This document shows, in pieces, positions 1 to 12,300 of a DNA stretch of 64,000 nucleotides (position 1 is its first letter; every line of letters starts with the position of its first letter). The stretch is from contig OZ059900.1 in assembly GCA_964057225.1 (NCBI GenBank), positions 13,950,001 to 14,014,000 on the forward strand, read 5' to 3'. The stretch is from Auanema rhodensis (Eukaryota; Animalia; Nematoda). A program made the position numbers and the translations under genes. The notes beneath the pieces were generated by a model. The model had not been told where the DNA came from. It did no database searches and was given only the letters and a program-made list of their open reading frames with translations.

Positions 1-2017
1 TATTAATTACCTGTGTGAGTTTACTTGAAACTATTTTGAAATCAACAATATGTTGTTTGATAAAACCATATCTATATATCTATATATATATCGACTATTG
101 TTTTAATGTTTTCACTCGCATCTTAAAAAACTCGCAATCATGAACATTCTTTCAAAATTTGTCTGTCAAACCATTGTTGAAACGTTTCTATATATTTTTT
201 GAATCTCAACAAGTAAGCCTCAAAGGCAAATCACCAAAATCCTTGTTTAACGACTTCAACAATTGATTCTTATGCCATTTTTTTTAATTAAAGAGTTTTA
301 TAAGATATTATTATAACTATTATTATTAATATTCATTTATAATTATCTTTTTCAAACTGCATACTCGCACAATAAAATTATTAAAGTTTGGTGTTCACAT
401 CTCTTTGAACTAGATGTTCCAAGGTGAGGACATAGAAATAAGCAAATTCTCGGATTGACCAAGCTGACTCATGTTTTCTTCATAGTTACTAGAATTCAAA
501 TATGTTTCAGCTGCATATACTAAACAGAAAAAAATAACATAATTGAGAGAATTTCTCCAAATCCTACAGACTTTTTGTATTTTCAATAAACTTTTTCACA
601 ATAAATATTGTTCAAAAAAGTTGTCAAAGTTTTCATTATCACAACTGTGAGATTTTGATTGTGTTCCTTGCTTAGTCATGCAGGTCGGCACTTTTTATGA
701 ATTTCTTGACTTTTTGAAATCTCAGATCTGCGCTCTCACACAGCTCTGTCATAGTTTTCATAGTTTTTACTGACAACGATTTGAATAGGTAGCGTGTCTC
801 ATCATGTTCAGTTTCCATACTCTCTCGAAGGTTCTGCTAACTGTTTCTCCAAAAATGATTGTAATCCTCAACCACTTGCTAATTTGAAGCTCCTCTTGTA
901 ATTTTAAATAAATTTATAACAAAACTCTTTGTCGTGTGTTATTTTGTTTATAAATGCTGTATTACTAAACGATAAAAGAAATAGTAATCACCAGCATTTA
1001 TTTATATTTAAATAGATAACGCATAAGATTAGATCAACTTGACCTTTACCTCCAACTATAACTAGAACTTTGGCTTCTTGTTTGTGAAAATGTTTCTAGA
1101 GCCTTTTTTGGAGAAAGCAATATAGCGAAGCTAGCTATAGTTGCTTTTTCATGCGTTTCATTAAAAATTTAAGTTAACTTGTCTGTGATTATTCATTTTA
1201 GAAGATTGAACTCGACTACAACGATATGACAAACAATTCTTCTAGACACTATACCTTATGGTCAGCTTATATTCAGATTGTAATACTAGATGTAAGATTT
1301 TTAAATATTCACTTTTCTCAAGCTCAATCTAACAAAGGTTTACTTGCAGAACGGTCGAATTCAGACATATAGAATTAAACGGAGTGAGCCGATGTCGAAG
1401 ATTTTCAATCACTATTTGGAAAGACGTTGCACCGCTAACTTTGAAATGACGTTAGATTATCACTTCAATGTGTTAGTTGGATTATATTTATTTAGCTTCT
1501 GGTACGATGGGCATAGGCTCAACGGAATTGAGACACCATACAGCTTAGTATTGCACAGCGGAGACACGATTGAGGTAATTTTCAGGAACCTGCAAGTTGT
1601 GGTATGAAAAAAAACTTTCAGGTTCGAAGAACTGAAACATCTGATTTCTATTAGACTGTTAATATATTCGACGTATTTAACCACTTCTTGTTGTTTCAAG
1701 GTTCCAAGATTTCTTAAACTGTTATTCTCGTTAAGATATTTCAAAAATTTACTTAGTTGAACAAATTGTTTTGATAACTCAACATGATTTCATCTCAATT
1801 TGGACAAATGTTAAGATATCGTTTATTAATTACCTGTGTGAGTTTACTTGAAACTATTTTGAAATCAACAATATGTTGTTTGATAAAACCATATCTATAT
1901 ATCTATATATATATCGACTATTGTTTTAATGTTTTCACTCGCATCTTAAAAAACTCGCAATCATGAACATTCTTTCAAAATTTGTCTGTCAAACCATTGT
2001 TGAAACGTTTCTATATA
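1..2017. repeat. Direct repeat with 1823-bp period; probable right end of a tandem duplication or array
   Basis: Bases 1-194 are identical by eye to 1824-2017 and the match runs to the window edge. One full unit is 195-2017. Confidence 0.9.
1226..1607 (+). CDS. Divergent SUMO-like (ubiquitin-fold) protein, ~92 aa, 3 exons, no C-terminal di-glycine
   Basis: Exons 1226-1291, 1350-1450, 1496-1607 with GT..AG introns give MTNNSSRHYTLWSAYIQIVILD-NGRIQTYRIKRSEPMSKIFNHYLERRCTANFEMT-FWYDGHRLNGIETPYSLVLHSGDTIEVIFRNLQVVV. This follows the SUMO pattern (FKIKxxTxMxKLxxxY...FxFDGxRIxxxxTPxxLxMxDxDxIEV). Confidence 0.75.
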
Positions 2018-2064: not shown

Positions 2065-4070
2065 CATATGTATTTGTCTCTTACGCTGCCAAAAAGCTCT
2101 CTCACTTTTCTCTGTAGTCTCATATATTGCGCAATCTCTAACATCTATGTTCGTCTCTCACGCCGCCAAATGAGATCTCATGTTTAGCACACTCTCTCGC
2201 TTTTCTCTTTACTCTCATATATTGCATGATCTCTAACATCTGTGTTCGTCTCTCACGCCGCCAAAAAAGGTCTCTTGCTTATCACACTCTCTCGCTTTTC
2301 TCTATACTCTCATATATTGCTCAATCTGTAGCATCTGTGTTCGTCTCTCACGCCACCAAAAAAGATCTCATGTTTAGCACACTCTCTCATTTTTCTCTGT
2401 AGTCTCCTATATTGCATGATCTCTAACATCTGTGTTCGTCTCTCACGCCGCCAAATGAGATCTCATGTTTAGCACACTCTCTCACTTTTCTCTGTAGTCT
2501 CATATATTGCGCAATCTCTAACATCTATGTTCGTCTCTCACGCCGCCAAAAAAGGTCTCTTGCTTATCACACTCTCTCGCTTTTCTCTATACTCTCATAT
2601 ATTGCTCGATCTGTAGCATCTGTTTTCGTCTCTCACGCCACCAAAAAAGATCTCATGTTTAGCACACTCTCTCGCTTTTCTCTATACTCTCATATATTGC
2701 ACAATCTCTAACATATATGTTCGTCTCTCACGCCGCCAAAAAAGATCTCATGTTTAGCACACTCTCTCGCTTTTCTCTATACTCTCATATATTGCACAAT
2801 CTCTAACATCTGTGTTCGTCTCTTACGCCGCCATATGAGCTCTCATCCTTTGTACGATCTCTCGCTGTTCTCTGAACTCTCATATATTGCTTAGTTTCTA
2901 ACATCTGTGTTCATCTCTCACGCCGTCAAATGAGATCTCATGTTTATCACACTCTCTCACTTTTCTCTGTACTCTCATATATTGCACAATCTATAACATT
3001 CGTGTTTTTCTCTCACGCCGCCAACTGAGATCTCTTGTTAACCACACTCTCTCGCTTTTCTCTATACTCCCATATATTGCTCAATCTCTAGCATCTATGT
3101 TCATCTCTCACGCCGTCAATTGAGATCTCATGTTTAGCACACTCTCTCGCTTTTTTCTGTAGTCTCATATATTGCACAATCTCTAACATCTGTGTTCATC
3201 TCTCACGCCGTCAAATGAGATCTCATGTTTATCACACTCTCTCACTTTTCTCTATACTCTCATATATTGCACAATCTATAACATTCGTGTTCGTCTCTCA
3301 CGCCGCCAAAAAAGATCTCTTGCTTATCACACTCTCTCACTTTTCTCTATACTCTCATATATTGCACAATCTATAACATTCGTGTTCGTCTCTCACGCCG
3401 CCAAATGAGATCTCTTGTTAACCACACTCTCTCGCTTTTCTCTATACTCTCATATATTGCTCAGTCTCTAACATCTGTGTTCATCTCTCACGCCGTCAAA
3501 TGAGATCTCATGTTTATCACACTCTCTCACTTTTCTTTGTACTCTCATATATTGCGCAATCTCTAACATCTATGTTCGTCTCTCACGCCGCCAAAAAAGG
3601 TCTCTTGCTTATCACACTCTCTCACTTTTCTCTATACTCTCATATATTGCACAATCTATAACATTCGTGTTCGTCTCTCACGCCGCCAAATGAGATCTCT
3701 TGTTAACCACACTCTCTCGCTTTTCTCTATACTCTCATATATTGCTCAATCTCTAACATCTGTGGTCATCTCTCACGCCGTCAAATGAGATCTCATGTTT
3801 ATCACACTCTCTCACTTTTCTTTGTACTCTCATATATTGCACAATCTCTAACATTTGTGTTCGTCTCTCACGCCGCCATATGAGATCTCATCCTTTGTAC
3901 GATCTCTTGCTTTTCTCTGAACTCTCATATATTGCTTAGTTTCTAACATCTGTGTTTTTCTCCCACGCCGCCAAATGAGTTCTCATGCTTAGTACGATCT
4001 CTCGCTTTTCTCTAACCTCTCATGCAATGCTTAGTCTCTAATATCTGTGTTCGTCTCTCACGTCGACTTT
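2065..4070. repeat. 95-bp tandem satellite, ~21 copies, with 3-mer (285-bp) higher-order structure
   Basis: The anchor CTCATATATTGC (or a 1-base variant) recurs at 2119, 2214, 2309, 2404, 2499, 2594, 2689, 2784, 2879, 2974 and onward with exact 95-bp spacing. Core: aacatctgtgttcgtctctcacgccgccaaatgagatctcatgtttagcacactctctcgcttttctct. Confidence 0.97.
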
Positions 4071-7857: not shown

Positions 7858-8102
7858 ATTGATCTCATTTTTTTGAGGTTTCTGTGAAGCCTCTATTCCT
7901 AAATCAATATACATATATTTATAGCATTATGAATTTGTTTTAATTACGGATTTGAATTGATATCTTAGCCTGCACTTTTTGCACATTTCATTTCTTTCTA
8001 TTTTATTTTGTTTCTTGCCTTAATATCCTGTTACGAGCGTTAATTTCAAAGTTTTAAAATAAAATATTTTTAATACATTTTGATATTTTCGATACAAAAT
8101 TC

Positions 8103-8302
8103 TTTTTCATCTTATTTAGCTGAATATTCTTGTTAGCTTTCTGGAAAAGTATAATTTCAATAATGTGAGGTGGTAGTTACTGACAGTTTTTACATATTTT
8201 ACACGCCATCTACGCAATCGGAAGTTAAAGCATATTATGAGAGATGTATAAACTCTGAATTATGAAAACTCCATACATTGAATCGTAGCACGCAGAGAAT
8301 GA
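8103..8302 (+). repeat. Isolated copy of the ~200-bp module also found in both palindrome arms and the spacer
   Basis: Matches 11584-11763 directly (cacgccatctacgcaatcggaagttaaagca...gaatcgtagcacgcagagaatga) and 10411-10590 and ~11000-11189 in reverse complement. Confidence 0.9.
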
Positions 8303-9301: not shown

Positions 9302-12300
9302 ATAGTCCAAAAAAATTATCATTTATCAAACAAACAACATATGCTTTCAAGAAAAAAAATGATAACAGAAGAATAATGAAGAGAAAATACAAAAATCAAG
9401 TTGGTTAGACTCTTCAGGAACAAGCCGATTCTCCAATTTACAAGTTCTTTAAAATATAGAGTCACTTAGCTGTCAATAGCAAAAGGTATGCAGACATGAG
9501 AGGATCATTAGATATTGATGTTTTATTTTTGGTTTTTGTATTATTGAACGAAATAAATCCGCAATTATACAAATACTACAGTAATAGTAAAAATGAAAAA
9601 AAATATGAGAAATGGTAAACACTTTCCAATTTTTTCCGCCAAGACACTTTATGGCGTCTTTTTTGAATATATATGAGATATATATTAGTATTTTAATGTT
9701 ATTTATCATTTTTTGAATGTTTGCCAATTTTTTTATTTATAATATTCGACAGTTTTTAGGCTTTTGATATCTTAACTATGCTTACCAATATCATTTATCG
9801 AGTTATGAAAACGATCTTCGGATTCATTCCCCGCTTATGTTTCAATTATAAGCCAAAGCGGTGTGAAAGAGCTAGCCATTCTCATATATACTCATCTCCT
9901 ATCTCCCATTCAAGTAAGATTCAAATCGTTTCTTTGCTTTGAAGACAGATTTTTTCAAATATAGCCGATTTTACGGAAATTCTTCAAACTCCACGAAAAG
10001 GCCTTGCTTCCAGTCAGACGAGAGGTAACGATTTGTATTTCATTTCATTACAATGTTTTTTTGTTTAGAACATTCTTCCCGTACCAGAAGAAATATTGCC
10101 AAAAAACTTTTCTAATTTTCTTTTTCTTTGAATTATTGTGCATTCTCATAAGTATTACTTTCTATGAATATTTGTATTTTTTTACAAACAAAGATTCTGT
10201 GATTTTCTTTTCAAGAATGTAAATTTTCTGTTTATTCATTCGCATATACATTACCTGCATATACTTTATCCGCATATACTTTATCCGCATATACTTTATC
10301 CGCATATATAACCTTTTTTGATTGTGAAACTATATTATAACTTTTTTTATTAAATAAAATATTTTTATAATTAGAAGCATCATTTATTTGATTAAAAAGG
10401 TGAAATAATTTCATTCTCTGCGTGCTACGATTCAATGTATGGAGTTTTCATAATTCAGAGTTTATACATCTCTCATAACATGCTTTAACTTCCGATTGCG
10501 TAGATGGCGCGTAAAATATGTAAAAACTGTCATTATATTATAATTTGTCAGAAAGCTAATAAGAATATTCAGCTAAATAAGATGAAAAAAAGTTTTTTTA
10601 GTGTGCGCAAAAGTTTCTGGCCAACCGCACTGAAATTTGAATAAAAATTTAAAAATTGTAAATTGCCATAAACCAAATTTCAAAATAATATTCGATAAAG
10701 TGTTTTTAATTGAAATTATTTTAAAAAATTCTATTTCTGCTTTTTCGTTTTGCTTCTGCTCTTGTTTTCTAACTGTTTTAAGCTGTATTTCAATCGAGGT
10801 TTGATTGCTTTGAATACTCTTAACCTTCTTCAATCCACTTAGGGTGAAGATATTGCTTCCATAAGTATTTGTGTATCAAATTTTATGTAACTCCTGGTGA
10901 AGCAGTAATAAATGAAATTGAATTAACTTTTTTTATTAAATAAAATATTTTTATAATTAGAAGCATCATTTATTTGATTAAAAAGGTGAAATAATTTCAT
11001 TCTCTGCGTGCTACGATTCAATGTATGGAGTTTTCATAAGTCAGAGTTTATTCATCTCTCATAACATGCTTTAACTTCCGATTGCGTAGATGGCATGTAA
11101 AATATGTAAAAACTGTCAGTAACAACCAGCTTGAAATTATAATTTGTCAGAAAGCTAATAAGAATATTCAGCAACGTAAGATGAAAAAGAATTTTCATTC
11201 TTATTTCTTGTCAAAATGTTTGTTCATCTCTCATAACATGTTTTACTATAATTCAATTTCATTTATTACTGCTTCACCAGGAGTTACATAAAATTTGATA
11301 TACAAATACTTATGGAAGCAATATCTTCACCCTAAGTGGATTGAAGAAGGTTAAGAGTATTCAAAGCAATCAAACCTCGATTGAAATACAGCTTAAAACA
11401 GTTAGAAAACAAGAGCAGAAGCAAAACGAAAAAGCAGAAATAGAATTTTTTAAAATAATTTCAATTAAAAACACTTTATCGAATATTATTTTGAAATTTG
11501 GTTTATGGCAATTTACAATTTTTAAATTTTTATTCAAATTTCAGTGCGGTTGGCCAGAAACTTTTGCGCACACTAAAAAAACTTTTTTTCATCTTATTTA
11601 GCTGAATATTCTTATTAGCTTTCTGACAAATTATAATATAATGACAGTTTTTACATATTTTACACGCCATCTACGCAATCGGAAGTTAAAGCATGTTATG
11701 AGAGATGTATAAACTCTGAATTATGAAAACTCCATACATTGAATCGTAGCACGCAGAGAATGAAATTATTTCACCTTTTTAATCAAATAAATGATGCTTC
11801 TAATTATAAAAATATTTTATTTAATAAAAAAAGTTATAATATAGTTTCACAATCAAAAAAGGTTATATATGCGGATAAAGTATATGCGGATAAAGTATAT
11901 GCGGATAAAGTATATGCAGGTAATGTATATGCGAATGAATAAACAGAAAATTTACATTCTTGAAAAGAAAATCACAGAATCTTTGTTTGTAAAAAAATAC
12001 AAATATTCATAGAAAGTAATACTTATGAGAATGCACAATAATTCAAAGAAAAAGAAAATTAGAAAAGTTTTTTGGCAATATTTCTTCTGGTACGGGAAGA
12101 ATGTTCTAAACAACAAAACATTGTAATGAAATGAAATACAAATCGTTACCTCTCGTCTGACTGGAAGCAAGGCCTTTTCGTGGAGTTTGAAGAATTTCCG
12201 TAAAATCGGCTATATTTGAAAAAATCTGTCTTTAAAGCAAAGAAACGATTCGAATCTTACTTGAATTTGAGATAGGAGATGAGTATATATGAGAATGGCT

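Follow-up and report, generated by a model that had tools for sequence, protein, structure and literature searches.

In the 64,000-nt stretch of Auanema rhodensis DNA that was analysed (contig OZ059900.1, positions 13,950,001 to 14,014,000; hereafter the window), positions 1 to 2017 hold the right-hand end of a tandem array with four + strand exons in each gene set (1202-1291, 1350-1450, 1496-1574 and 1622-1654). These exons probably encode a diverged SUMO-like beta-grasp domain without the diglycine, which is repeated in about 4.6 units with five exon sets and is predicted to be a non-covalent SUMO look-alike.

The repeat can be read from the window itself. Positions 1-194 equal 1824-2017 with 0 mismatches in 194 nt and divergence begins at 195/2018, which gives a period of 1823 bp and means that the window starts inside the preceding repeat copy and that the array ends at 2017. 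The window thus holds the tail of the preceding unit (1..194, + strand; 100% identity with the 3'-UTR stretch 1824-2017), so that the array extends past the left edge of the window, and one full 1823-bp period (195..2017, + strand), the array having its right edge at 2017/2018 and its left edge outside the window, at unit position 922. The second copy within the window comprises 194 nt only, and tandem repetition was otherwise drawn from contigs of four public runs (X1, X6, X12 and X13, from three studies) that were compared with 195-2017. The joint 2017>195 was present in contigs of all four runs, and DNA contigs from two studies close the unit into a circle. The DNA run X1 contains the unit as a circular 1853-nt contig (1823 plus 30 of overlap) with a depth of 225, against a depth of 48 for the two long flanking contigs. 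This ratio of 4.7, contig depth being a mere proxy for copy number, suggests about 4.7 units and fits about 4.6 units with five gene copies. A 9614-nt flank contig enters the unit at position 922. The unit consists of segment A (922-2017, 1096 bp), which carries the exons, and segment B (195-921, 727 bp); the array layout is flank-(A-B)x4-A-flank, with a total of about 8.4 kb and five exon sets. An array of this layout is to be expected if two copies of the gene-bearing 1.1-kb segment A underwent unequal crossing-over.

It could be objected that the tandem repetition is an assembly artefact, given that the visible part of the second copy in the window is only 194 nt and that X1 may be the source sample of the assembly. 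We consider this extremely unlikely, because the second study (X6) has the same joint 2017>195 in its DNA contigs; the joint is likewise found in the RNA contigs, and the depth of the X1 unit contig argues against an artefact as well. There is hardly any difference between the copies. Only 2 of 1823 positions distinguish the window copy from the collapsed unit contig: at 547 the window copy, the last of the array, has G and the DNA runs have A, and at 1224 it has A where all four runs have C, a change from GAT to GCT in the codon directly before ATG 1226. Since the copies collapse into one contig and differ so little, the array was either amplified very recently or is subject to homogenisation between its copies. 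The 1823-bp tandem unit and its recent amplification, both proposed by the first-pass annotation, are therefore well founded, and the read-depth check that it had called for points the same way. No extra copy outside the array was detected when the exon peptides were searched against the window with tblastn. In X6, which has a different organism label, several contigs together make up the unit and branch off sideways at 1032-1061 and 1349-1378, implying that copies or strains differ structurally at these places.

The gene is expressed, as contigs from two RNA samples of one study show. The RNA labels of these two runs (X12 and X13) are guesses, and their contigs are regarded as transcripts because they contain three skips bounded by GT..AG, none of which occurs in any DNA contig. 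The first exon within the unit (1202..1291, + strand) follows an acceptor AG at 1200-1201, is open in frame from 1202, where the match of the RNA contigs begins, and ends in the beta1-like YIQIVILD. It is joined over intron 1 (1292..1349, + strand, 58 nt, GT..AG) to exon 2 (1350..1450, + strand), which is defined by the RNA joints and encodes beta2 and helix alpha1 (GRIQTYRIKRSEPMSKIF...), the region of the SIM groove in SUMO. Intron 2 (1451..1495, + strand, 45 nt, GT..AG) is in frame and stop-free, and appears as an exact 15-residue insertion against all SUMOs compared. Exon 3 (1496..1574, + strand), with the translation FWYDGHRLNGIETPYSLVLHSGDTIE, corresponds to SUMO beta3-beta5. The joints 1291>1350 and 1450>1496 were seen in RNA contigs only and never in DNA contigs, which confirms the spliced + strand gene and both of the introns predicted from sequence.

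Moreover, both RNA contigs contain a third skip that is absent from the DNA. It was reported as 1572>1620; cut two nucleotides further on, it corresponds to intron 3 (1575..1621, + strand, 47 nt, GT..AG) with the sites GAG|GTAATT and TTTCAG|GTT. Once it is spliced out, the codons for IFRNLQVVV are gone and ...SGDTIE continues directly with VRRTETSDFY, which together with the stop TAG (1652-1654) makes up the last coding exon (1622..1654, + strand), assigned from the translation and the RNA joint and without diglycine. The C-terminus IEVIFRNLQVVV given by the first-pass annotation arises from reading into intron 3 and has to be replaced by IE|VRRTETSDFY. A three-exon gene that retains intron 3 and ends in IEVIFRNLQVVV is highly unlikely to be the main product: the ORF 1344-1607 is indeed open and ends accordingly, and the Pfam score rises slightly with that tail, but 1575-1621 is spliced out in both RNA contigs and the retained form occurs in no contig.

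The 3' UTR (1655..2017, + strand) runs on into the next unit, the RNA contigs covering 1620-2017 and then 195-292. Correspondingly, 195..300 (+ strand) is the 3' UTR end of the transcript of the preceding copy; the contigs pass the joint 2017>195 and stop at 277 and 292, and an ATTAAA signal lies at 287-292. Because the 3' UTR crosses into the next unit, the expressed copies include at least one that has another unit behind it. The stretch upstream of the acceptor (944..1155) is represented by separate RNA contigs of low depth (950-1155 in X12, 944-1151 in X13). The segment 940-1160 of each unit has a far stronger tendency to fold than its shuffled counterparts (z -3.1 on the + strand and -4.8 on the - strand), and 944-1155 may be a remnant of an intron or outron, or a small structured RNA. 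Rfam gave no match for the whole window at gathering scores, nor for 150-2100 at E<=1.

The search for SUMO likeness was done exon by exon or with a contiguous stretch in which intron 2, in frame and free of stops, is retained. With phmmer against PDB, the piece 1350-1604 matched SUMO2/3 (E about 2e-4), Drosophila Smt3 (6e-5) and also NIP45 SLD2, with overall E values of 6e-5 to 1e-3. The alignments were collinear, with a 15-residue gap placed exactly at intron 2. Exon 2 alone aligns to residues 18-42 of SUMO2, and exon 3 alone to residues 51-76 of both SUMO2 and NIP45 SLD2 (E 0.017 for the latter) and to positions 44-69 of Pfam Rad60-SLD. When the sequence was aligned with ten SUMO domains, it proved to carry the residues of all five invariant columns (F, G, R, T and D). 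The Pfam profile Rad60-SLD (PF11976) scored 23.3 bits for 1350-1604 and 19.1 bits for 1350-1574 against a cut-off of 23.8, both queries being without beta1 and with the 15 residues of intron 2. The SUMO-like spliced gene of the first-pass annotation is therefore supported by PDB matches collinear with SUMO2/3 and by the kept fold core, and the profile check that it had suggested is answered in part: the PDB matches to SUMO are there, the Pfam score stays under the cut-off. A feature search of a protein atlas yielded weak Rad60-SLD leads only.

For exon 1 alone there was no significant match in PDB or Pfam, and its local alignments to SUMO N-termini were not meaningful. A direct reading shows that YIQIVILD and the subsequent NGRIQTYRIK are compatible with the spacing of beta1, turn and beta2 in SUMO, but for one residue less. 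An AlphaFold2 model of 1350-1574, which is without beta1, retains intron 2 and was built with SUMO rows, reached a pLDDT of 81, and the best 50 Foldseek PDB matches of this model were all SUMO, Smt3 or NIP45 SLD2 (TM 0.55-0.67, E from 4.6e-3). Since a truncated piece and SUMO rows were used, the model leans towards SUMO and is supportive but not independent.

The diglycine is absent from the spliced C-terminus (...SGDTIE|VRRTETSDFY) and from the intron-retained reading (QVVV*) alike, in agreement with the first-pass annotation, which closes the canonical route to conjugation. For SUMO the diGly motif is essential for conjugation (PMC6680281). Without a GG, the product is not expected to undergo processing, activation or conjugation. 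The acidic surface near the C-terminus is largely replaced, as had also been proposed: within the SUMO2 stretch E77-D85 four of the six acidic residues are exchanged, D82 and D85 being kept as D and E, and the net charge is approximately neutral, in contrast to acidic SUMO. The C-terminal tail that is processed in SUMO is lost as well. The SIM groove shows the exchanges F32>Y and K33>R relative to SUMO2 and keeps I34, K35 and R36, together with P39, S41, K42, Y47, E49 and R50 of the helix. The motif FWYDGHRL aligns with FFFDGTKL of NIP45, and its D matches Asp394 of NIP45. It is through the acidic FxxDG residue that SUMO, Rad60 SLD2 and NIP45 SLD2 dock on the back of Ubc9. Asp394 is needed for the function of NIP45 SLD2 (PMC10497417), and C. 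elegans SMO-1 binds SIM peptides at the beta2/alpha1 groove (PMC5646861).

Because the beta2/alpha1 groove is largely kept (an aromatic-R-I-K-R strand, then a P-M-S-K-I...Y.ER helix) and the D of FWYDG is retained, we predict binding to SIM proteins and/or to the E2. The product would act non-covalently, as a look-alike of SUMO and not as a modifier, and might dock on SIM-bearing proteins and/or on the back of UBC-9, either as a free protein or as a module of a larger one. A decoy function towards SIM proteins, Ubc9 or ULP proteases, as imagined in the first-pass annotation along with possible germline expression, would be one form of such non-covalent SUMO mimicry.

Whether the domain is free depends on the 5' end of the transcript. 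At the acceptor 1201/1202 both RNA contigs show a cis-splice to sequence that is no spliced leader and lies outside the unit and the window, and they extend upstream of 1202 by 185 nt in X13 and by 3895 nt in X12. The upstream exon ends in ...TTCAGAAAAT, and its 30-nt end is absent from both strands of the window at up to 3 mismatches. Since the contigs run upstream into sequence absent from the window, the RNA has at least one exon before 1202-1291. The SUMO likeness holds, but the reading as a small, free SUMO mimic is doubtful given this cis-splicing to at least one exon beyond the unit. We regard a free protein of 92 aa starting at ATG 1226 and a C-terminal domain of a larger protein as having roughly even chances.

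In the latter case the exons would be the 3'-terminal exons of a much larger gene to the left of the array, encoding a long protein that ends in one non-conjugatable SUMO-like domain, comparable to Rad60/Esc2/NIP45 or UAF1, and the four copies downstream would serve as alternative cassettes of terminal exons or as spares; we assign this model a little less than an even chance. In addition to the splicing exactly at 1201/1202, it is favoured by the frame, which is open across the 10 known codons of the upstream exon and the 8 codons of 1202-1225 into ATG 1226, weak evidence because none of the three frames contains a stop in the known 30 nt. It is also favoured by the left edge of the array, which lies just 280 bp before the acceptor, so that copy 1 is short of unit sequence for a promoter of its own. 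However, ATG 1226 is located at the normal start site of SUMO, 14 residues before beta1, and the TTTTAG acceptor 24 nt before this ATG represents the usual nematode trans-splice layout. Furthermore, spliced-leader tips of 22 nt are dropped in contig building, a minor read-through isoform could dominate the path of a contig, and a contig spanning two genes is no proof of a single transcript.

An exhaustive phmmer search of 1.84 billion representative proteins returned generic SUMO and poly-SUMO matches with 30-44% identity; nothing more closely related than generic SUMO was present among these proteins, nor was a full-length partner protein. The gene is therefore an orphan, and lineage-specific as the first-pass annotation had supposed. 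The read-through piece found nothing in a word-indexed protein collection, a search that is blind to longer proteins. The genome's own smo-1 lies outside the window. At the base composition of the unit 6.7 stops are expected in 92 codons and none was found (P(none) about 1e-3); open 92-codon stretches make up only 1.3% of all such stretches in the window. The divergence from any SUMO amounts to about 60-70%, with a single length difference of one residue. Judged from the sequence, the coding frame fits long-term purifying selection on a protein rather than a decaying copy, because the frame is intact, the core residues are kept and three introns are spliced correctly despite an identity of 30-44%.

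The opposite view would be that of a young amplicon without function, i.e. a decaying SUMO duplicate that is carried into RNA by read-through from a gene farther upstream and plays no part at the protein level. The absence of the GG and of relatives and the Pfam score under the cut-off could be explained in this way, and plant SUMO paralogues that lie in tandem pairs or are without diGly are regarded as pseudogenes (PMC6680281). This nevertheless seems rather unlikely, since neutral sequence would have accumulated about seven stops in 92 codons, the length differs from SUMO by only one single residue, three introns with canonical sites are spliced precisely and all columns of the fold core are kept. 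A processed (retro-copied) SUMO pseudogene was ruled out separately by the three spliced introns, the intact frame and the lack of any spliced form in the DNA runs.

The array is followed, 80 bp past its right edge, by a 95-bp satellite (2097..4062, 20.7 copies, 86% matches) that is not part of the gene and has a strong skew of C over G and of T over A. Beyond the satellite lies an ADAM metalloprotease gene on the + strand with a 12-letter protein motif. Repeats are found between the ADAM gene and the next gene (8096-8302 with 11578-11763, 10241-10308 with 11866-11933), as are mirrored 15-bp tandem repeats. The neighbouring genes are adm-2 and hpk-1, which we take to be X-linked in C. elegans, and from this comes the idea of X-linkage here. 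The worm is known for skewed X transmission and for massive programmed elimination of DNA. Conceivably, an ampliconic and possibly X-linked gene for a non-conjugatable SUMO mimic might tune or sabotage SUMO-dependent meiosis or chromosome handling, and would then reflect dosage-driven intragenomic conflict instead of a housekeeping paralogue; we mention this as a speculation that is unlikely to be correct. A 2026 preprint on this worm describes a 180-Mb germline genome of which 61% is eliminated from the soma with the loss of few genes, and makes no mention of SUMO (10.64898/2026.08.27.747507).

The sequence and copy number of SUMO are normally under tight control. Non-conjugatable SUMO-like domains are already known; the five-fold amplification of one in an animal is unusual. 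If our reading is true, an expressed, frame-preserved and five-fold amplified SUMO look-alike constitutes a natural non-conjugatable SUMO mimic in an animal, which could be a handle on non-covalent SUMO signalling, for example on SIM recognition or the backside regulation of the E2. Moreover, the array may exemplify how quickly genes can be amplified in a genome whose chromosome biology is unusual. Should a large protein prove to end in this domain, nematodes would have a SUMO-like-domain protein that had so far gone unnoticed.

A comparison with known systems begins with SUMO itself (SUMO/SMO-1/Smt3, PF11976). The array gene shares with it the collinear order of beta2 to beta5, a plausible beta1 (YIQIVIL) in exon 1 and a similar length if ATG 1226 is the start (92 aa), and it keeps the FxxDG, TP and DxIxV core and most residues of the SIM groove. 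In contrast to SUMO, it is without diglycine and ends in VRRTETSDFY, has 30-44% identity and has lost 4/6 acidic residues before beta5. Human SUMO2/3 match it better than does C. elegans SMO-1 (5XQM; E 0.023). The array gene is present in multiple copies; in C. elegans SUMO is encoded by just one gene (PMC5646861).

With the RENi proteins (Rad60, Esc2 and NIP45 SLD2) the array gene has in common a SUMO fold without GG. RENi proteins dock non-covalently, which we infer for the array gene. Exon 3 is as similar to NIP45 SLD2 (E 0.017) as to SUMO, and the equivalent of Asp394 is kept; also, the transcript may carry a long N-terminal part. The RENi proteins differ in having two tandem C-terminal SLDs (PMC10497417), where the unit shows one, the upstream exons being beyond the window. 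The array gene displayed no similarity specific to RENi, and RENi genes are not tandemly amplified.

The plant SUMO paralogues (Arabidopsis SUMO4/6 and SUMO7/8, and a Brassica SUMO5 copy without diGly) resemble the array gene in that tandem duplication was followed by fast divergence and that some of them are without diGly (PMC6680281). These plant copies are held to be pseudogenes or are weakly expressed (PMC6680281), whereas the array gene has an intact frame, introns and fold core, gives rise to spliced RNA and has undergone a five-fold, nearly identical amplification.
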